Shown: one piece after another, positions 1,032-53,137 of the stretch
Position numbering within the stretch: the stretch's first letter is position 1
Layout: every line of letters starts with the position of its first letter
Origin: Schizochytrium sp. TIO01
Lineage: Eukaryota > Protista > Bigyra: Labyrinthulomycetes
NCBI GenBank assembly: GCA_004764695.1
Contig: SMSO01000014.1
Span: 2,723,648-2,787,647 of the forward strand
Length of the DNA: 64,000 nucleotides
Direction: 5' to 3'
Notes under the pieces: model-generated
Told to the model about the DNA's origin: nothing
Databases searched by the model: none
The model's input: the letters and a program-made list of their open reading frames with translations, nothing else
Position numbers and translations under genes: made by a program

Positions 1032-2107
1032 TGTTTGTGTCATGTTAGGTATAAAACGAATTTTTAATTAAAATCAAGCTTGATGTTTTCAAGATATTTT
1101 TCCTTTGAATGAGGTGGTCGGATAGACGAGCAATCAAAAGGAATAAACTAGATAAATTTTTGAGATTGAGTATAAGCAATAGAACGGCATTTCCTTTTTT
1201 CCCTTCTTGTACCTTGACTTCATTTGTTTACTTTTAATTTATAAACAGATATACAAGGGAGCGCGAAATTGAAATGGATGAATGTGACATGGTGCTTCTT
1301 GTGGTTGTCGTATTCTTAAAGCTGTGTGTTTGTTTTGTCTTTCCGCCGTCGACTGGGCGGAATATACGAGCAGTATTTTTTGAATGCTCTATACCTTCAC
1401 AATCCCCCTTTCTCTGCCCTCCTGGGTCCTCCCGGAATGTTTGTCTTAATGTACCCTACCTGGCGAATATGCACGTCAGGCCCAGGAAATGTTCCACCCT
1501 TCATCTACACAACTACGACAACGACAAGCACTTATTTTAAATGAGCAGAAAAACTGCCTGAGCAAAACTTTCAGATGGAAATCGTTTAAAAGAATTCTCG
1601 ACGACGATGTAGCCGCCTGCCTAAATAGTTTCTAAACAGTCATGCCGCCCCCGGCAGTATGTTTTGCCTGTTGCGGAATGAACTTGGACGCACCAAAAAT
1701 AAGGGACACTCTATAAGATCCAAGAATCCCTCTCGATCTTGCTCGGAGCGCTGCGACGGAAACTCTACGAGCAGATAATTTGCAACTTACTAGCGACGGT
1801 GAGTCTTCCAACTTTCTATCCAGCATGTGGTGCCGTCTTGTGGCATGTGCTGCAGTCTCTCTCTTTAGGCTGCACTGCGTTACACACAAAGGGAAGTACG
1901 ATTTCGTACACGTGCGACCCGCGCGTGCAAAACCTGCACTTTTGATTTGGAGACATGCGATCTTCTTTTCATGTGATTACTATCTCGACCAGACAGCAAC
2001 GGGAGCTACCTCGTGTTAAAATTCATCACTGCAACCCTCTTCAATGGGTACCTTCAAGATTGTAGAGGTTTGGCTCAGCTTGGATGCAAATGACAACTAG
2101 ACCAAGG

Positions 2108-2167
2108 CCAGCTGGGAGCTGGGAGCTGGGAGCTGGCTGCCTGGCTGCCTGGCTGCCTGGCTGCCGG
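2108..2167. repeat. Compound short tandem repeat (GGGAGCT then CTGGCTGC)
   Basis: Directly visible in the sequence. Confidence 0.8.
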
Positions 2168-2428
2168 CCATAAACTGCAGAATAATCTGCGAATGTCCAT
2201 ATGATCTGAACATTGGCTTGGCTTGAAGCGAAGAAGCTGGGTGGTAGACGTTGTCCATGTTTTCAGGGTGCATACTGATGCACTCAAAATGCAGCGTTAT
2301 GACGGCAGTGCACACCCCCTATTACCAAGTTTATGACCTTTTAATTATTCATTTATTATTATACTTAAAGAAACATATTTGAATTAAAAATTTATTTTAA
2401 AATGTTGTTTTATTTATTTGATTTAAAT

Positions 2429-2460
<32 letters not shown>

Positions 2461-2684
2461 CTTTTCGAAATGACGCGAATGATATTTAAACAAAATACAA
2501 ATATTCTGTTTGGGTGAAAAATCTTAGTGAGACTTTCTCATTTGCCACAGGAATTCGTAAAAAGGCGCTTAAAACGCATGGGCGAATGCTGCACACAGGC
2601 ACCTACCTGCCTATGAGCGAGGCCGCTAGACGTTGACCATGCGATCTATGGCGACACGTAGGCAGGCACCTGGGTCCTTTCTGT

Positions 2685-2985
2685 TTGTTGTTGTTGTTGT
2701 TGTTGTTGTTGTTATTTTTGAAGTTTCGTCTCCCTTCTTGAATTAACAAAACATTCAATTTGGGAGCTCGTTTTCAGGAACTACGATGCTTTTTACTCTC
2801 AAGATGCAAACAACTCGCAAAGCGATGGTTAGTTCCGCACGAAAGGAATTACACTCGAAATGCTATCTTTGTAATCCCAGCGATGAAAGACTTTCGACCA
2901 GTGGCGATTGCGCTCACCGGAAACCCGGAGCTCGGCGCCGCCGCGACAGCGAAGCCTCTGCGCGCGAGAGAGCCAGGCCCCAGTT

Positions 2986-3016
<31 letters not shown>

Positions 3017-3071
3017 GCAGTGCAACCCCGCCGGTTTGCTCAGCGCCGGGACGAAATAGTTCGTCTCCATC

Positions 3072-3105
<34 letters not shown>
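2685..3105. repeat. Microsatellite cluster: (GTT)n ~2685-2713, (CCTG)n ~2987-3015, (CCG)n ~3072-3105
   Basis: Directly visible in the sequence. Confidence 0.85.
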
Positions 3106-3106
<1 letters not shown>

Positions 3107-3798
3107 TCGTGACGATCGATCAAAGTGCCCTCCATGGCCGTCATGGCCGCCATCATCAGCGTCGCCGCCAGGATTCAAACCGTGGAGGCTCTGGCGGTTC
3201 AACGGGATGGGATCTTCCTTCGCCTTCGAGCAAGCAGCCCGGCGCTGCCGTCGAGCAGCAGCGGCAGCGGCAGCTCAGGCAGAGGCCGCGGATGACGGCG
3301 GTGATAGAGTTACCGCTTCGAGCGATTCGGGTCCGTGTTGAAGCTAATTCTGTGCTGCCGCCTCAGGTCCACACGCCTCGAAGAGATGCGATGCGATGCG
3401 ATGCGATGCGAAGAGATGCGATGCTTCTCCTCGACGGCGGAAGATCCTGGCGGCTGAGGTGCTGTGGTCTTCGTTGGAGTTGAGTTTGAGTTTGGGTTTG
3501 AGTTTGGGTTCGAGTTGGAGTTGGAGACGGAGCTCGGGCTCCTCGTCTGAGATTTCTGGCGACCATCGCCAGAGATTCCCGCGGACCTCTCGCTCCTGGT
3601 CCAAGCTCGCTGCCGGCCCATCCTCAGGTTCTTGCGCTCGAAGACGAGGGTTCTCGAGGTTCCCTCTGCAGAAGCGCTCCGGAGCGCGCGATCGATGGCG
3701 AAGAAGACGAAGAAGAAGAAGAAGAAGTCCTTTTGAAGCGGCTTTCTCTTCGAAACCTCTTCGAATCCCCGCGCGATTTCAAATCATCCAAGTAACTC

Positions 3799-3993
3799 TG
3801 AATTTCGAATTTTGAATTTCGAATTTCGAATTTCGAATTTTGAATTTCGAATTTTGAACTTTGAATTTTGAACTTTGAATTTTGAACTTTGAACTTTGAA
3901 CTTTGGCCTTTGACCTTTGAAACTTGAAAGTCGAGGACACTTTCTCTTCTTGTTCTTGTTCTTGTTCTTGTTCTTGTTCTTGTTCTTGTCTTG
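3799..3993. repeat. Degenerate heptamer array (GAATTTC/GAATTTT/GAACTTT) followed by (TTCTTG)n
   Basis: About 18 tandem 7-mers at ~3799-3930 and a hexamer run at ~3946-3993. Confidence 0.85.
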
Positions 3994-6403: not shown

Positions 6404-7134
6404 ACGAAGAAGTTTGCTGCGCCAACTATAGCTAGCGGAGGAAAGCACACCAGGCTGAAAGAAATGTCCTTCGGACCCTTTCTGGTTGTCCCGGATAGTA
6501 GTGCCTAGCTAGATAGTAGCTACCTATCCAGTAGTACCTTGGTAACCACTAAACTGCCTATTTCATCAGTCCGCCGAAGAGGTCTCAAGGCGCCTGCATA
6601 GCTTTTTCGGTAGGACTGCTCATGATGTACGTGCACGCCTCTGAAATAAGTTCCTTTCAGGTTCGCACTGCGGGGCTTGCTGGCGCGATCCATCTCGCTC
6701 AAGTCTTGACTCGCGCCTCTGTGCACTGCCTCATGGAAACGCCAGTGGAGAGCAGAGAAAGCTGCGGGGCACGCGAGGCAACTCATGCCTGCGACTGCGG
6801 GGCTTGGAGCCATGATTTTCTACTTTGGATGTTGAGCAGACCGAGCGTCAGCGACGAAAGGAGAGAAACAAACAAACAAACAAACAAATAAATAAATAAA
6901 TAAATAAATAAACAAACAAAATAACAAACACCTTGGAGTTGCTGGCTGGGAGGAGATTGGCAGTGAATTATTTCGTGGCTTTGTGAAGAATTGGTCAATT
7001 CGTGGAGAAATGAGGCCCTTTCGAGAGCGCTCGGATACCACGAATTGGGGACGAATTCATTAACGACATTGAAGAGTATCTTCTTTCGAATGCTTGCAGC
7101 TTTTCAAGTCTCTTGGTTTCCCCTACTTAATTCA

Positions 7135-47391: not shown

Positions 47392-48669
47392 TTAAAACAT
47401 TCGCTTCTTTGATCGAGGAGCAGCAGAATCTGTTGTGTTGAGATCGTCAAGACGACGCTTGTAGCGGTCAAGGCGGTCACGGTCCTTATCTGACTTTTGC
47501 ATTAACGCTTCGTATTTAGTTTCGAGCACAGAAATTTCACGTCTTAAGGTCTTGGCTATACGCTCACCAGCCTCAATACGGTCATCTAAAGCAGCAGTCA
47601 GACGTTGAACCTCAGCCTTGAGCTGTTTGTTCTCACGTTCCATCTCTTGTAGAGAGCGACGGGTAGCGTGTAACTCTTTGATCGCACCTTGACCAACATC
47701 AAGAAGTTGAATTGTCGTAGGACCTGACCTGCGCCTATTCAGGGCAGAAGCTAATACGGAATACTGTGATTTAACAATAGACTGGGGATGCATCCCCCCA
47801 TGCATCACGTGATGCTGTGAACCTTGTTGCATTCCATCAATGTTTGCATCCTGAGTTTGGTCACTGCCTTCATGAATGCCACTCCCCCCTGGGTTCCCTT
47901 GTGAATCTCCGTGGCTATGATGTTGCTCATCCATTTCATGACCAACCTGACCAGTACCATCACCAGAAGGGTCATCCTCTGATGGAGGCATCGGCGGAGC
48001 GCCACTTCTCTCTGCGTTAGGATCATCATGTGAGTCCGGTCCCAGCCCACCATATGCAGAAGTCGGGGGAGGAGGTGGCGGTGGATTTCCATGGTGATCA
48101 TTAAGCGACCCATCCTGGTGCATAGTGTCCACACCCCCAGAGCCAGCGAGTTCGGATATATGATCATCTGGCATGGGAATCACTATACGCTCAATCATGT
48201 ATTGGTCTAACATTGATCGCATCTCAGCTTCGGAGATTTCTGGCACTGTTATTTCATAATCTTTGAGATCTTTCGTAAAAAGATTTTCAGGTGGTGTAAC
48301 ATTTGTTGCAGGTTTCCATCGCACAAGACGTTTACCATCGAATCGAGAGCTTGAAAAATGAGCTTTACTCAGACGTTTGTCTTTACCTTTTTGCACTTCG
48401 TCCTCAGAAATGCCTAGTGCTGCAAGCCATCTAGTTCTGGAAAAGGTATTAAGCTCCCTCTGATTTTTAGCATCTTTTGATGGGAGTTCCACAAAGCCTC
48501 CTCTAATATCACCAAGCTGTGAGAAAACACTAGTCAAAACTTTACACATGTCCCTGTCACACAGACAACGTTTTTTTAAACGCGGGACCTTTGACGTAAC
48601 TAGAGCGGAGGGTTGCGAGCTGGTTGCTCCCATGGGTAATGGAGGAGGTGGAGGGGGCATCTGCTGGTG

Positions 48670-48700
<31 letters not shown>

Positions 48701-49533
48701 TGGTGTTGTTGTTGCTGGTGTTGCTGTTGCTGTTGCTGGTGTTGCTGTTGCTGGTGTCGTTGTTGCTGCTCCTGCTGCTGCTCCTGCTGCTGCTCCTGAT
48801 CTTGCTGTTGTTGTTGCTGCTGCTGCTGCTCCCGCTGCTGATTCTCTTCTTCATCACGTGGGTTCTGCTGGTCTTGATGTTCCTGATGTTCCTGATGTTC
48901 CTGCCCAACCTGCTGACCCGGCTGTTCTTGTTGATCTTGTTGTTCGTGCTGACTGTGGTGGTCCTGTGAATCGTGCTGGTTGTGCTGATCGAGCTGGTCT
49001 TGCTGAACTTGCGGATCTTGCTGTTCCTGCTGATCATGTTGGTCGTGTTGGTCGTGCTGATCCTGTTGATCGTGCCGTTCTTGTTGGTCTTGTTGGTCTT
49101 GTTGATCCTGCTGAACATGTTGCTCATGATGACCATGTTGATCAAGATCATCCTGCAAATCTTGAATTGGTTGTTGTTGAAGATGATGTTGGTGATGTTG
49201 CTGCTCGTCCTCCCGCTGCTGCTCTAATTGCTCAACCTCCTCCTGTGCTTGGTGCCCCTGCTGCTCTTGCTCAATTTGAATCTGTTGTTCATGAACATCT
49301 TCTTCATCTCCATCATTCTGCTGACCATCATCAAGACTCTGTTGCTCTACTTGGTGTTCCTCGTGGTCTTGAACAACACTATTGTCACCCGTAGCTTGCG
49401 CTTGTTCTGACATATCGTTCATGTGCTCCATATTCTCCACATTTTCAACATCCTCGGGATCCACAGAAGCTTGCACAGACGATGCGGCTGGATCGAGATT
49501 GCCAATATCGACGTTCCCAGAAGGATCTGCCAT
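47392..49533 (-). CDS. Q/H/D/E-rich low-complexity protein with a central THAP-like domain, C-terminal coiled coil and basic NLS; putative transcription regulator
   Basis: 713-aa ORF with polyQ. Central KKRCLCDRDMC..FVELPSKD..RTRWLAAL..RLSKAHF; coiled coil LQEMERENKQLKAEVQRL; terminal PRSKKRMF. Confidence 0.75.
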
Positions 49534-51138
49534 TCTATTTCTGTGCCGGATGGTTAATATTGCGTGAAGAAGATGTGACCAGAAAGGAAAATCAAGGGCG
49601 CAAAGGCGTCGTTGGAGGCCAGCTCCTGCCGCACAACCTTACTCTGGCACAGGACTCCAGGACCGGCGCAGCTCTCTAGAGCTCGTTCCTTGTATGGTAC
49701 GGGAGCCGGTTTCGTGGCGTGCTCCCTGCGAGAGAGACTCGCGTCTGGGGCCACGCCGTGCGCAAGGCAGTCTCGGAATTGGCTTGGCAAAAAAGAAAGA
49801 AACAAAGAACGAACTGTAGTAGGGACCTAGACTAAACTGGAGATGCGATTTGTTCCGTAAGTTCCTGATGATCCAAATGCTCCTAATTTAGTTAGATACC
49901 TACGCTTATTTATGATATGTGATACATTCTCCTTGTATAAAACGAGATGGTGCTCTGATATCTGAGCATTCGTTTCAGGAAATCTATGTCTGTATTTAGT
50001 TCAAATATATACCAAACAGAAGAATGTTTAGGAAGTTTATTGATGTGAAGCTGACGGTGATTAAGGTAGGATGCTGTAATTTGCAGCAAGGAACGCTACT
50101 CCAAAGAGTTCGCACAGAAGAATAACAAGCTTCTTGAGTTCTGTATCAATGTTGACAAAGCCCGCATTACTTAAATACTTTCTACAGAGTTCTCATATAC
50201 CTCCAAATTTATCAAAAGGTTTCCATTGCTGACGTAAGATACGAGGTTAGATGTACTACTTGATAACGAAAAACAGAAGACTAAAGCTCACATAATTCAT
50301 TCTTCATCGGGTATATGAATGTATCAGCCCCAATCTTAGGACTTGAAAGCTCCTAACCTTTGCAGTAGAAAATCACAAAGATACAGTTATGCAAGGGAAG
50401 TGCATACGTTGGATGAGATTGATAATAATGGCATGAATATACTATTGGCTTGGTAGAAACGAAAAAGGACAACCCGTATTCCAGAGGGAAAATAAGTATT
50501 CTTTTCGCCTTTGTATATTCGATTCCTATCTTAACTCTCAGTTCCAAGTTTCCATCGATGGTGCTAAAACGACTAGCACCAATTCATATGTTTTACTTTT
50601 TGAATATTTTCTTTTCACGACTCGCATCCACAAAGCATAGATAGCTAGATTATAAGGTAAATGTACAGCTTAACCCATCGGATTGGTTCGCACTACCTAA
50701 CGAGTCTCGAGGCGTAATCATATGTTTGACAAGTAAACCATCTTTGGATCATTGGGTTCTTTGTCATGGAATCAACTTAAGACATGCTATCGTTTCTATT
50801 CTTTGCTAAAAATGGTTCTTGTAACTAATAAAATTAATGAAGCATTACAGATGGATCAAAAAACGTAAAAGTTCGATAACTTATATTTCGATGTGATTGT
50901 TTCATATTAACCATATATTATGTTTAGTTAGATTATTAATAAGAAGTAGAGGTTAGATAAGAAAATGGGGAGGCCGAGGAACCGACAAGCTCCAAACACT
51001 GCAAGTGGAGCAAACCTCGAATACAAACCAGCAAAGTTCTTTCACCATCTCATTGGAAACACGCTAGTCGCTTACTTGATGCTTCAGGTGCTGACGCGTG
51101 ATTTGCGGGGGAGTATTGAAGTAATATACAGCTACTGT

Positions 51139-51164
51139 CTAACCTAACCTAACCTAACCTAACC
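51139..51164 (-). repeat. Interstitial telomere-like (TTAGG)5 / (CCTAA)5 tract
   Basis: CTAACCTAACCTAACCTAACCTAACC at 51139-51164. Confidence 0.85.
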
Positions 51165-51292
51165 AAGCCCTCATGTCCGACACATCCTGTGTATCGGACT
51201 GACATCATACATTCATTCCTGCCTGTATCCAGACCTGAAACCCCAATAACTCATATATCATCCTCTTTCTCTTTCTCCTGAGTTCGTCATCC

Positions 51293-51957
51293 TTGTCAGA
51301 CTACCTCTCCACGCTTCACAGCTCAGGCTACTCTGCAATAGGAAGTTTGGGGTCTCAGCAAGCGCCCTTCGGGGCTGGGCCGACGGCGGACGCGTGCGCT
51401 TCGCGCGCTTCCCCGGAGGCAAGCGCATCTATGCCAGCGACGATGTTGAGCGCATCTTTGATTGCGGTTCCACCGGCCGCGAGCAACGCAGCTCTGGATG
51501 TACCGTTATCTACGCCAGAGTGTCCTCGGTCAAGCAAAAGGAGGACCTCGAACGCCAGGTTGGCGATCTCCAGCGCGCCTACCCAGATGCTTCCGCCGTC
51601 TACAAAGACATCGGTAGCGGGGTCAATTTCAAACGCCAAGGTCTGTGCTCCCTACTGGACGCCTGTGACCGCGGCGGAATCGGCCAAGTTGTGGTCATGC
51701 ACCGCGACCGACTTGCGCGAATCGCAGTCGACCTCTTGGAACACCTTTTCGAAAGATAAAATGTCAAACTCGTGGTACACGGCCAAGATGCACATGCCGG
51801 AGACTCAGACACCTTCACCAAAGACCTCCTCGGAATCATCACCGTCTTTGTGGCATCGCATCACGGAAAACGAGCAGCGCAAAATAGACGGCGACGACGC
51901 AGCGAGGAAGAAGCGAGCTCGCACGAAGGCGCGCAAGACCATCAAGAAAGAATATAA
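51293..51957 (+). pseudogene. tnpA: IS607-family TnpA serine recombinase (MerR-like HTH + resolvase), disrupted
   Basis: Frame of 51394 reads RKFGVSASALRGWADGGRVRFARFPGGKRIY (HTH), VIYARVSS (catalytic Ser codon 51523), KQKEDLERQ, KDIGSGVNFKRQGL, VVVMHRDRLAR. An in-frame TAA at 51757-51759 is followed by NVKLVV...DLLGIITVFVASHHGKRA to stop 51957. There is no in-frame ATG upstream of the HTH. Confidence 0.88.
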
Positions 51958-53137
51958 CCTTGTCCGTACCAGAAAGGTTAGGGTATATCCTACTAAAGAT
52001 CAACGTACACAGTTGCTTAAATGGTTTGGTGTCACTAGAAGAGCCTACAATATTGGCGTTGCGTTTCACCGAGACATGGCGAAGGGCGAGGAAGAAGCCA
52101 TCAGATTGCATCAAGAAGCGTGCATCAAAAAGGATCGTAAGACGAAGCAGGTTTTGGTAGATGAAGATGGGAATCCAAAAACACATGGGGCACTTGGTGG
52201 AGAACTGAAGGCCGTCCGATATAAAGAAAAGAATGCTGCTCCTAAATGGGTTCTCGAGGTCCCACAGGCTATCCGTGATTCCGGGATTCTGGATTTCTTC
52301 AAGGCTATTAACTCGGGACGAGCCAAAAACGAAGAACTCGCTGTACAAAAGAAAGTCCATGAGCAATCTTTTTATAAGTTTCGGACCAAGCGTGATGAAT
52401 CACAGATTTTCGAAGTGAATGCACGTACCTGGAATGCGAAGAAATCAAAGACCTCCAACTTTCTAAAAGAATTCCGAATACGTAAAGAAAAGTTCCCCGA
52501 CCAGATTTCGAACGCCATGCGTGTGCAAATGAATCGCCTTGGGCATGTCTACTTCTGCTTCTTACGAGAAGAAAAAAAGCGTCCAATGGACCAGGCACCC
52601 AAGGCGCACCATGGTGTCATTGCTCTAGACCCGGGTGTTCGCTCGTTTCAGACGATGTATGACGCCGATGGCCGCGCCATTGAATGGGGCACAGGGAAAG
52701 ATTTTAGAACCATATTCTATCTCTGTCGCCGCGTTGATAAGATCCAAAGCAGCATTGATAAAAAGAAAACTGCATCCAGTGATAAAGACAATTTCAACAC
52801 CCCCTTGAAGCGCGCCTTCTATCGCGCCCAACTCAAGATCAAGAACAAGATCACTGAGATTCACCGCAAGCTCGCGCTTTGGCTTTGTGAAAACTATCGT
52901 GTTATTCTCCTGCCCAAATTCGAAACCTCTAAGATGAGCAGGAGGATGGAGCGACGGATCTCCAAGAAGTCTATTCGAATGATGTGTCGTTGGTCCCATT
53001 TTGGGTTCCGCCAGGCTCTCATTCATAAGGCTGAGATGTTCCCGTGGTGCAAGCTTGTTCTTTGCCAAGAAAGTTACACTTCCAAAACATGCAATGAGTG
53101 TGGGAGAAATAAGGATAGTGTTAGACTAGTGTACTAG
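51431..53137 (+). CDS. Fanzor2 / IS607 TnpB-like RuvC RNA-guided endonuclease, C-terminally truncated
   Basis: RTRKVRVYPTKDQRTQLLKWFGVTRRAYN (TnpB N-terminal/HTH region); RuvC-I GVIALDPGVRSF (Asp 52628); KIKNKITEIHRKLALWLCENYRVILLP (Pro 52913 at the canonical RuvC-II Glu position); WSHFGFRQAL; CQESYTSKTCNECG (alternative Glu 53069 and first CxxC). Stop at 53137 comes before the second CxxC and DRD. First ATG 51431; frame open from TTG 51293. Confidence 0.9.
   Translation: MPATMLSASLIAVPPAASNAALDVPLSTPECPRSSKRRTSNARLAISSAPTQMLPPSTKTSVAGSISNAKVCAPYWTPVTAAESAKLWSCTATDLRESQSTSWNTFSKDKMSNSWYTAKMHMPETQTPSPKTSSESSPSLWHRITENEQRKIDGDDAARKKRARTKARKTIKKEYNLVRTRKVRVYPTKDQRTQLLKWFGVTRRAYNIGVAFHRDMAKGEEEAIRLHQEACIKKDRKTKQVLVDEDGNPKTHGALGGELKAVRYKEKNAAPKWVLEVPQAIRDSGILDFFKAINSGRAKNEELAVQKKVHEQSFYKFRTKRDESQIFEVNARTWNAKKSKTSNFLKEFRIRKEKFPDQISNAMRVQMNRLGHVYFCFLREEKKRPMDQAPKAHHGVIALDPGVRSFQTMYDADGRAIEWGTGKDFRTIFYLCRRVDKIQSSIDKKKTASSDKDNFNTPLKRAFYRAQLKIKNKITEIHRKLALWLCENYRVILLPKFETSKMSRRMERRISKKSIRMMCRWSHFGFRQALIHKAEMFPWCKLVLCQESYTSKTCNECGRNKDSVRLVY

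Follow-up and report, generated by a model that had tools for sequence, protein, structure and literature searches.

A 3'-truncated copy of a recently mobile IS607-type Fanzor2 family in a thraustochytrid genome, with a nuclease frame predicted to overprint the transposase gene

Background

Fanzor2 proteins are compact programmable genome-editing nucleases. Linkage to an IS607-type transposase has already been named as a mark of Fanzor2 (Bao and Jurka 2013, PMC3627910), and a DPG motif at RuvC-I combined with a C-terminally shifted RuvC-II glutamate has been described as the signature of pro-Fanzors and Fanzors (Yoon et al., 10.1101/2023.08.09.552727). In ApmFNuc, the Fanzor2 of a mimivirus, the mutations D324A and E467A abolish cleavage (PMC10530073). 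Here we analyze a locus of this kind in a 64,000-nt stretch of contig SMSO01000014.1 of Schizochytrium sp. TIO01 (the window), which carries a transposase gene, tnpA, and a TnpB-like nuclease frame. We read this locus as a non-autonomous member, truncated at its 3' end, of a recently mobile 2.2-kb IS607-type Fanzor2 family that works by the mechanism proposed below in a thraustochytrid genome resembling that of Aurantiochytrium limacinum, and assign this reading a probability of about 0.88. The IS607/Fanzor2 kind is already known, and the window copy is one more member of it; what is new here is evidence that the Fanzor2 frame may overprint tnpA across the element lineage. In the part of the literature accessible to us, we found neither a thraustochytrid Fanzor2 nor a description of a Fanzor frame overlapping tnpA.

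Family assignment and closest relatives

An earlier note, made from the letters of this DNA, had read the locus as an IS607-type Fanzor2 element with a tnpA (helix-turn-helix (HTH) plus YARVSS resolvase) and a TnpB-like open reading frame (ORF). Both genes are real. Pfam Resolvase is found in the window ORF 51394-51756 with an E-value of 4.5e-16, and the TnpA of a sister copy contains the Resolvase and MerR-type HTH domains and passes the NCBIfam IS607 transposase equivalog NF033518 (143 bits, cutoff 110). The TnpB-like ORF of the window contains the motifs ALDPG, ILLP and QESYTSKTC as described, and matches HTH_OrfB_IS605, OrfB_IS605 and Cas12f1-like_TNB. In the sister nuclease, HTH_OrfB_IS605 and Cas12f1-like_TNB are above the Pfam cutoffs, OrfB_IS605 is sub-threshold, and NCBIfam guided_TnpB reaches 86 bits, below its cutoff of 100. 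The profile search that had been proposed thus recovers Resolvase, MerR-type HTH and HTH_OrfB_IS605, with OrfB_IS605 sub-threshold in the sister protein.

Among proteins of solved structure, the mimivirus Fanzor2 L79 (PDB 9b0l) gives the best sequence match (E = 1e-16). The RuvC-I Asp in ALDPG (52628-52630, + strand, as for all window features below unless stated) and the relocated RuvC-II Glu in QESYTSKTC (53069-53071) align with D324 and E467 of ApmFNuc, respectively, and both are invariant in our homologue alignment A1; the region of the relocated Glu fits the pattern E-x6-[CH]-xx-C. According to the alignment with ApmFNuc, the usual place of the RuvC-II Glu is taken by the Pro of ILLP (52913-52915). 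An AlphaFold (AF2) model built from alignment A1 has a predicted local distance difference test (pLDDT) score of 70-90 in the core, and a Foldseek search with this model returned 9b0l at the top (E = 1.7e-15), then ISDra2 TnpB, with the Fanzor1 structures at about 1e-5. As modelled, the protein has the TnpB-type architecture, namely HTH/WED, REC, a split RuvC and a zinc-finger TNB. Both genes lie inside common element ends in 17 copies; the nuclease belongs to an IS607-type transposon whose TnpA is a serine recombinase. The IS607 TnpA, the DPG motif at RuvC-I, the relocated RuvC-II Glu and the mimivirus Fanzor2 as best relative together bear out the assignment to IS607-type Fanzor2.

In a large protein collection, the closest protein is an MMETSP transcript product (601-aa ORF, 91% identity), after which comes a group with 43-49% identity, a Durusdinium trenchii protein among its members; of the homologues with a name, the nearest is a dinoflagellate protein (about 46%). 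Named cyanobacterial TnpBs show 30-36% identity, and named bacterial TnpBs at most 36%. In a FastTree phylogeny of 56 rows, most of them unnamed and with no curated Fanzor2 reference among them, the family groups with the Durusdinium and EukProt proteins with Shimodaira-Hasegawa (SH) support of 96-100, while cyanobacterial TnpBs and chloroviruses fall in other clades. It had also been suggested that a large DNA virus may have delivered the family; the viral contigs closest to it show only 34-44% identity.

Distribution of the family in the genome

We searched the 64.07-Mb genome (37 contigs, TTAGG telomere motif) with the element, and obtained 44 DNA matches and 108 protein matches across many contigs. 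The telomere motif and the base composition of the window agree with those published for A. limacinum MYA-1381 (TTAGG, 45% GC). About 20 copies are young, with identities of 92-100%. There are 17 full-length copies of about 2,200 bp each, which have exact ends in common, unrelated flanks and pairwise identities of 94-100%; five of them (L014-L018) form a cluster that is 99-99.8% identical. Of the full-length copies, both ends and empty sites for which the earlier note had recommended a genome-wide BLASTn search, the first two were obtained within this genome, and one empty site came from public contigs of another strain (see below). Intact sister copies, which the earlier note expected, exist as well: an intact 232-aa TnpA together with an intact Fanzor frame ending in ...RYLSKDMI is found in eight copies (L007, L009, L010 and L014-L018). 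The window copy belongs to a subfamily bearing a fragment of a long terminal repeat (LTR) retrotransposon, with four copies at different sites that are 99-100% identical, one of which, on another contig and with different flanks, is 100% identical to the window copy over 2004 bp. Every member of this subfamily has a broken tnpA, so mobilization of these copies must have taken place in trans.

At least 60 older fragments are also present. Many of them form a short family of about 940 bp (L092-L111, e.g., G000:C30:8949820-8951250), in which element positions ~46-500 are fused to ~1705-2198, so that the left end and the first ~125 tnpA codons are retained together with the last ~130 Fanzor codons and the right end. 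This short family is 65-70% identical to the young copies and has the right end ...CTAAGTG, not ...CTAAGAG; judging from its sequence, it is evidently a deletion derivative of the same transposon. Two young copies lie head-to-head with an old copy, about 40-70 bp from its left end (L009/L022 at G000:C13:3.96 Mb and L016/L031 at G000:C13:5.82 Mb). Insertion could favour sites whose sequence is like an end of the element, or these two cases could be due to chance.

The genes tnpA and TnpB are typical of prokaryotic insertion sequences (IS), and the element is intron-less; we therefore considered whether it might be bacterial contamination or a misassembly. However, dozens of copies reside on Mb-size contigs (1-10 Mb), a eukaryotic Ty1/copia fragment interrupts the window copy, an occupied and an empty site differ between strains (see below), transcripts occur in a eukaryote transcriptome set, and the best named homologue is a dinoflagellate protein whereas named bacterial TnpBs stay at or below 36% identity. 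Contamination or misassembly is therefore hardly credible, and the element is resident in the eukaryotic genome, as had been proposed from the window alone: its copies sit on many chromosome-size contigs and one site is empty in another strain. Two results had been named in advance as telling against a resident Fanzor2, i.e., flanks that cannot be linked to the element and a high-identity placement inside bacterial TnpB clades. Neither was found, since copies are on chromosome-size contigs, one site varies between strains, and the named bacterial TnpBs reach at most 36% identity and fall in a separate clade of the tree described above.

Anatomy of the window copy

Alignment to the sister copies places the repeated-element copy at 50851-53103, directly after a CAG at 50848-50850, and not at 51165-53137 as the earlier note had it; tnpA starts with the ATG at 50965, and the Fanzor frame is truncated at its 3' end. 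In the left-junction CAG, the C would come from the target and the AG would be the crossover dinucleotide, the triplet being the predicted target-adjacent motif (TAM). The left end and the 5' untranslated part, delimited by alignment to full-length sister copies, occupy 50851-50964, the first 5 nt (ATGGA) being part of a short stretch that varies among copies. The first 27 codons of tnpA (MGRPRNRQ..., 50965-51046, from the ORF list and BLAST boundaries) are severed from the remainder, and the N-terminus that they encode is identical to that of the intact TnpA of copies L005 and L012. A 294-bp Ty1/copia fragment (51047-51340) splits the gene at 51046/51047. The remaining tnpA (51341-51957) encodes the end of the HTH, the YARVSS catalytic serine and the resolvase domain, and contains an in-frame TAA at 51757-51759, where intact tnpA copies have Gln or Lys.

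The Fanzor2 frame, which is +1 relative to tnpA, extends from the first ATG 3' of the LTR insertion to the end of the element (51431-53103). Its part 51431-51957 overlaps tnpA, and 51944 is the first position of the conserved Fanzor core (KKEYNLVRTRKVRVYP). All sister copies lose their homology to the window copy at 53103, inside the CNECG of the zinc finger, and none aligns past this position; unrelated sequence is then read in frame for 11 codons (53104-53137) to a TAG at 53135-53137. The window copy therefore lacks the final 244 bp, with the second Cys pair, the RuvC-III ADRD, the stop codon and a 109-nt tail. Having stopped after the first CxxC, it has neither the complete C4 zinc finger nor the RuvC-III Asp (RD motif), whereas sister copies have both (CNECG...CPNPKC...ADRD), and full copies continue past the truncation point with TLHH...CPNPKCNHVADRD...SKDMI and then the 109-nt structured tail. 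Comparison with the sister copies shows a plain truncation, which rules out a 3' intron in the window ORF. With tnpA split and carrying a TAA, and with 244 bp missing, the window copy can give rise neither to TnpA nor to an active nuclease nor to a guide RNA; it is a dead relic.

The 294-bp insertion consists of the last ~71 bp of the internal sequence and the 228-bp 3' LTR of a retrotransposon, and is 99% identical to L113:1058-1356. The corresponding complete element (L113:1058-6894, 5.8 kb) has identical 228-bp LTRs (1058-1285 and 6667-6894) and, in its ORF, an integrase upstream of RVT_2, which identifies it as a Ty1/copia retrotransposon. Its LTR is dispersed, with at least 10 matches in the genome. 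A telomere-like tract, (CTAAC)5, at ~51139-51166 was considered as the left end of the Fanzor element, but was ruled out because it lies inside the copia LTR (LTR match at window 51114-51341; also in L112); five telomere-type CCTAA repeats are thus carried within the LTR of this copia family. Adjoining the element, an uninterrupted 713-aa ORF with very long Gln/His/Asp-rich low-complexity runs occupies 47392-49533 on the minus strand.

Element ends, target site and mobility

The right end ...GTAGTTTAAAATCTAAGAG is found in nearly all young copies and is followed by unrelated DNA. The left-end core reads [A/T]CAAAAA[A/C]CGT(T)AAAA..GATAACTTATATTTCG, and in 16 of 19 young copies a CAG is located 2-7 nt upstream of it. 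The two ends show inverted similarity (...TAACTTATATTTC versus the reverse complement ...AAACTTGCATTTC). By aligning public contigs to L018:1000-3800, we found one site that is occupied in the genome studied here and empty in another strain, in which a contig from one DNA run joins L018:1304 to 3507, so that the skipped segment of 2,202 bp coincides with the element but for at most 1 nt. The sequence of the empty site is ...GCGATC|AGAAGCGCC (GATC|AGAAGC), and that of the occupied site is GATC-G-TATGAC...CTAAG-AG-AAGC. This pair shows no target duplication, and AG is present at both junctions in most copies.

These junctions are consistent with a mechanism in which TnpA would excise and integrate the element at an AG dinucleotide, giving C-AG-TATGAC... 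at the left flank and ...CTAAG-AG-flank at the right; insertion at a dinucleotide would leave no target duplication, as expected for IS607. A transcript would pass through the right end, and consist of the omegaRNA scaffold and, after it, a guide taken from the flanking sequence. Since a vacated donor site would present CAG followed by the right flank, while an occupied site presents GAG followed by the same flank, CAG is the predicted TAM. Fanzor2 with its omegaRNA would then cut the vacated site (CAG followed by the guide match) and spare occupied sites (GAG followed by the guide). The element would subsequently be copied back by homologous repair, which has been shown for bacterial TnpB. 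The TAM, RNA-guided cutting and homing are all inferred.

Two observations sit uneasily with this scheme. First, the single empty site fits an AG crossover only if L018 has lost one A of its left junction (CGTATG versus CAGTATG). Second, the 2-7 nt after the CAG vary (TATG, TAAGA, TAGGG, ATGGA, GA, TAC ...) among copies that are otherwise 99-100% identical. Furthermore, L018 has the left-end variant of another subfamily, so left-end sequences seem to have been exchanged between subfamilies, as might be expected if segmental duplication or gene conversion, not transposition by TnpA, had multiplied the young copies in a family that no longer moves. This alternative also gains from the fact that a strain difference is known for a single site only, and could be old. 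However, every copy has exact ends in common with the others and unrelated flanks, the segment skipped at the empty site is the element to within 1 nt, and the LTR-bearing copies with a broken tnpA, 99-100% identical at four sites, fit mobilization in trans by copies with an intact TnpA. We thus consider spread by duplication or conversion improbable, and prefer TnpA-mediated transposition.

Overlap of the nuclease frame with tnpA

In the young family, the +1 frame across tnpA has no stop codon where 3.3 are expected, and only 0.8% of synonymous shuffles are free of stops; the remaining frame contains 5 stops. Among the young copies, parsimony-informative sites are much rarer in the overlap than in the part that encodes only Fanzor (22/696 versus 123/1281, p = 4e-8), and the same is true of variable third positions (11/232 for tnpA versus 56/427 for Fanzor, p = 6e-4). 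In contrast, singletons, which reflect decay after insertion, are equally frequent in the two parts (25/696 and 45/1281). A comparison of the majority consensus of the old family with the young copies lends this weak support, the fraction of identical third positions being 0.81 in tnpA and 0.69 in the Fanzor-only part. At the level of sequence, these patterns show that selection keeps the +1 frame open.

The extension that this frame would encode is conserved in relatives. Ten of them (43-47% identity, 618-667 aa) share the motifs C[VA]P[FY]WTP, LWSCT.T.L, SW[FY]T and SLW..ITENEQRK. As LWSCTATDL is the +1 reading of the TnpA segment VVVMHRDRL, conservation of this motif requires fixed third positions in tnpA. 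When the extensions of these relatives are back-translated with degenerate codons, their -1 frame can encode a TnpA like that of the family, with scores of 607-682 versus about 280 ± 17 for shuffles; this test is passed by about 42 of the 48 homologues with an extension of at least 100 aa.

Stop codons were also counted in real DNA loci, taken from IMG/VR viral contigs and GTDB prokaryote genomes; the viral tnpA loci were found with a TnpA alignment (A4) as the query, a single-protein TnpA query of the viral contigs having given no match. At the 71 giant-virus tnpA loci with a downstream Fanzor in the +1 frame, the +1 frame across tnpA contains 66 stops where 293 are expected (median 0, with zero in 43 loci; median in the +2 frame 16), whereas at the five giant-virus loci without a downstream Fanzor it contains 170 stops against 167 expected (medians 35 in +1 and 21 in +2). 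The prokaryote-labelled loci contain 125 stops versus 272 expected where a TnpB follows in the +1 frame (n = 55, medians 1 and 10), 42 versus 49 where TnpB is in another frame (n = 7, medians 3 and 11), and 65 versus 70 where no TnpB follows (n = 7, medians 9 and 6). Loci with a TnpB or Fanzor in +1 differ from those without one (Mann-Whitney p = 2e-7), and the +2 frame is not depleted of stops (ratio 0.98). Fanzor is in the +1 frame in every virus locus that has a downstream Fanzor. Over 72 virus loci, the Fanzor-frame ATG follows the tnpA ATG by a median of 11.5 nt; the distance is at most 150 nt in 61 loci, and no other ATG intervenes in 50. In a 1,021,348-bp giant-virus genome of mimivirid size in IMG/VR (L136), for example, the Fanzor ATG lies 7 nt after the tnpA ATG, and tnpA has no +1 and 15 +2 stops.

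Within the prokaryote collection, TnpA identity is highest (51-56%) for short contigs (0.5-2 kb; L194-L196, L198 and L212) whose +1 frames are open throughout, and which are assigned to metagenome-assembled genomes labelled 'Glo_2', 'Glo_3', 'Glo_5' and Hydrogenophaga, and look like mis-binned eukaryote or virus contigs. In a metagenome scan, we found no relative with a tnpA; the closest full-length match (L051, Ga0209390_10020585, 1514-3808, 43% identity) has the extension, but without a TnpA frame. Its similarity to our extension has E-values of 1e-10 to 1e-14 with composition correction off, while its -1 frame contains stops and has no similarity to TnpA. There is an apparent gap, possibly an intron, between its extension and its core, and the pieces on either side were kept separate, not joined. 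Loss of the transposase from a Fanzor element may explain this locus.

The +1 frame over tnpA could be open for reasons other than translation, such as codon or composition traits of this TnpA clade, a constraint at the RNA level or occasional frameshift fusion, with Fanzor starting near the end of tnpA. This possibility draws some support from the disorder predicted for the extension, from the first Fanzor-frame ATG being at element position 235, 283 or 295 depending on the subfamily, and from the partial depletion of +1 stops in prokaryote-labelled relatives (ratio 0.46, median 1). However, it does not readily account for the dependence of stop depletion on a downstream Fanzor in the +1 frame (virus loci lacking one have 170 stops versus 167 expected), the undepleted +2 frame (0.98), the Trp, Cys and Pro motifs kept in the extension at 43-47% identity, which require fixed tnpA third positions, the similarity to the extension in L051 despite the -1 stops and the lack of TnpA, or the near adjacency of the two ATGs in the virus loci. 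We therefore regard an untranslated open frame as unlikely, if less so than the alternatives to residence and transposition considered above, and conclude that the +1 frame is most likely translated as a dual-coding overlap.

As for how both proteins might be made, the next ATG after that of tnpA (element position 111) is at position 235 and lies in the Fanzor frame, with none between, which led us to propose leaky scanning, probably the simplest route in a eukaryote. One capped mRNA would yield both proteins, and the first ~170 residues of Fanzor would be a disordered, overprinted extension ending in a basic stretch resembling a nuclear localization signal. In the AlphaFold model, residues 1-141 are disordered and are followed by a helix over ITENEQRK and the basic region. 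Two points count against this proposal: the bases around the tnpA ATG (A at -3, G at +4) make it a strong start, at odds with leaky scanning on a large scale, and the N-terminal extension has a pLDDT below 50 and, as a protein, is predicted from sequence only.

The 3' tail and transcripts

The complete element ends with a structured 3' tail of ~110 nt (...CTAAG-AG), and its last 122 nt fold into consecutive hairpins (z = -4.05). Members of the old family, too, keep the tail motif ATGCAAGTTTTGCAAATTTT(A/G)TAG almost without change. Variants in stem 1 are transitions that keep G-C or G-U pairs, and stem 2 differs between families (GGAG/CTCC, GGGC/GCCC, GGTC/GACC) in shifted registers, the second and third stem-loops (SL2 and SL3) being in different registers in the two families; as covariation support, these variants are anecdotal, and at best suggestive. 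A search of Rfam found no family for the tail, only a sub-threshold chance match to a miRNA.

Transcription was examined in public sequence runs. Contigs from a run that appears to be RNA, as it leaves the left flank uncovered, cover the element from ~70-90 nt inside its left end and continue past the right end for 280 nt of flanking DNA, and no splice joints are seen in them. An oligo-dT RNA run gave two low-depth contigs over the element. Such read-through would suit a predicted omegaRNA whose guide is taken from the flanking DNA. Several points weigh on the other side. RNAalifold returned zero pairs for 31 mixed old and young 3' ends, in a gappy alignment in which dead copies decay neutrally. 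All runs are stored as contigs, which are blind to the starts, ends and levels of transcripts, and the type of run, RNA or DNA, was guessed for three of the four. The omegaRNA, its ends and its guide length are predictions.

Implications

The family comprises recently moved intact copies in a culturable protist, an occupancy difference between strains and a predicted TAM, CAG, that is not A/T-rich; taken together, these would let homing be tested in the native host. The overlap bears on gene models, since many database Fanzor2 proteins of 550-780 aa include the extension. Translation of the extension, if it occurs, would point to a way in which the two genes of a bacterial element can be expressed under the rules of eukaryotic translation. 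As the open +1 frame is partly present in bacterial relatives, it may be a pre-adaptation that lets a two-gene IS work in eukaryotes and viruses. This wider proposal, namely that in IS607-Fanzor2 elements the nuclease overprints nearly the whole transposase, with close starts and leaky scanning from one mRNA, and that the open frame pre-adapted such elements to eukaryotes and viruses, is put forward tentatively, and we would put its chances somewhat below even. What the data show is the anatomy of the element, the history of its copies, the family assignment, a site that differs in occupancy between strains, and selection that keeps the +1 frame open.

Comparison with known systems

Fanzor1 (SpuFz1, PDB 8gkh) is likewise a eukaryotic RNA-guided nuclease of the TnpB family with a relocated Glu. 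However, its structures are matched by our model far less well than 9b0l (Foldseek E = 1e-5 versus 1.7e-15), and it is carried by other transposon superfamilies, without an IS607 TnpA. Like our family, the mollusc Fanzor2 proteins (MmFNuc, DpFNuc and BaFNuc) and the IS607-type Fanzor2 elements of Bao and Jurka (PMC3627910) are multi-copy, intron-less and located in eukaryotic genomes; the TAMs of the mollusc proteins are A/T-rich (TTTA, TA and TTA), in contrast to the CAG predicted here.

The TnpB of ISXfa1/IS607, termed 'pro-Fanzor', resembles our family in that a serine recombinase inserts the element at a dinucleotide and occupied sites are spared. In ISXfa1, the TAM at the left flank is GGG and the right-end junction is CGG, one base apart (10.1101/2023.08.09.552727), to which CAG and GAG would be the parallel here. 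It differs in being bacterial, in its operon-type layout and in its dinucleotide, GG rather than AG.

The mimivirus Fanzor2 (ApmFNuc/ApmFz2, L79, 9b0l) has in common with our family the DPG Asp, the relocated Glu, the CxxC...CxxC finger and the DRD motif, as well as an IS607 TnpA partner, an N-terminal basic region and a right-end guide RNA, which is predicted for the family here. On the other hand, the identity is only ~20-25%, its host is a giant virus rather than a protist chromosome, and its activity is proven while that of our family is predicted. ApmFNuc prefers an NGGG TAM (PMC10530073), whereas the TAM predicted for the thraustochytrid family is CAG.

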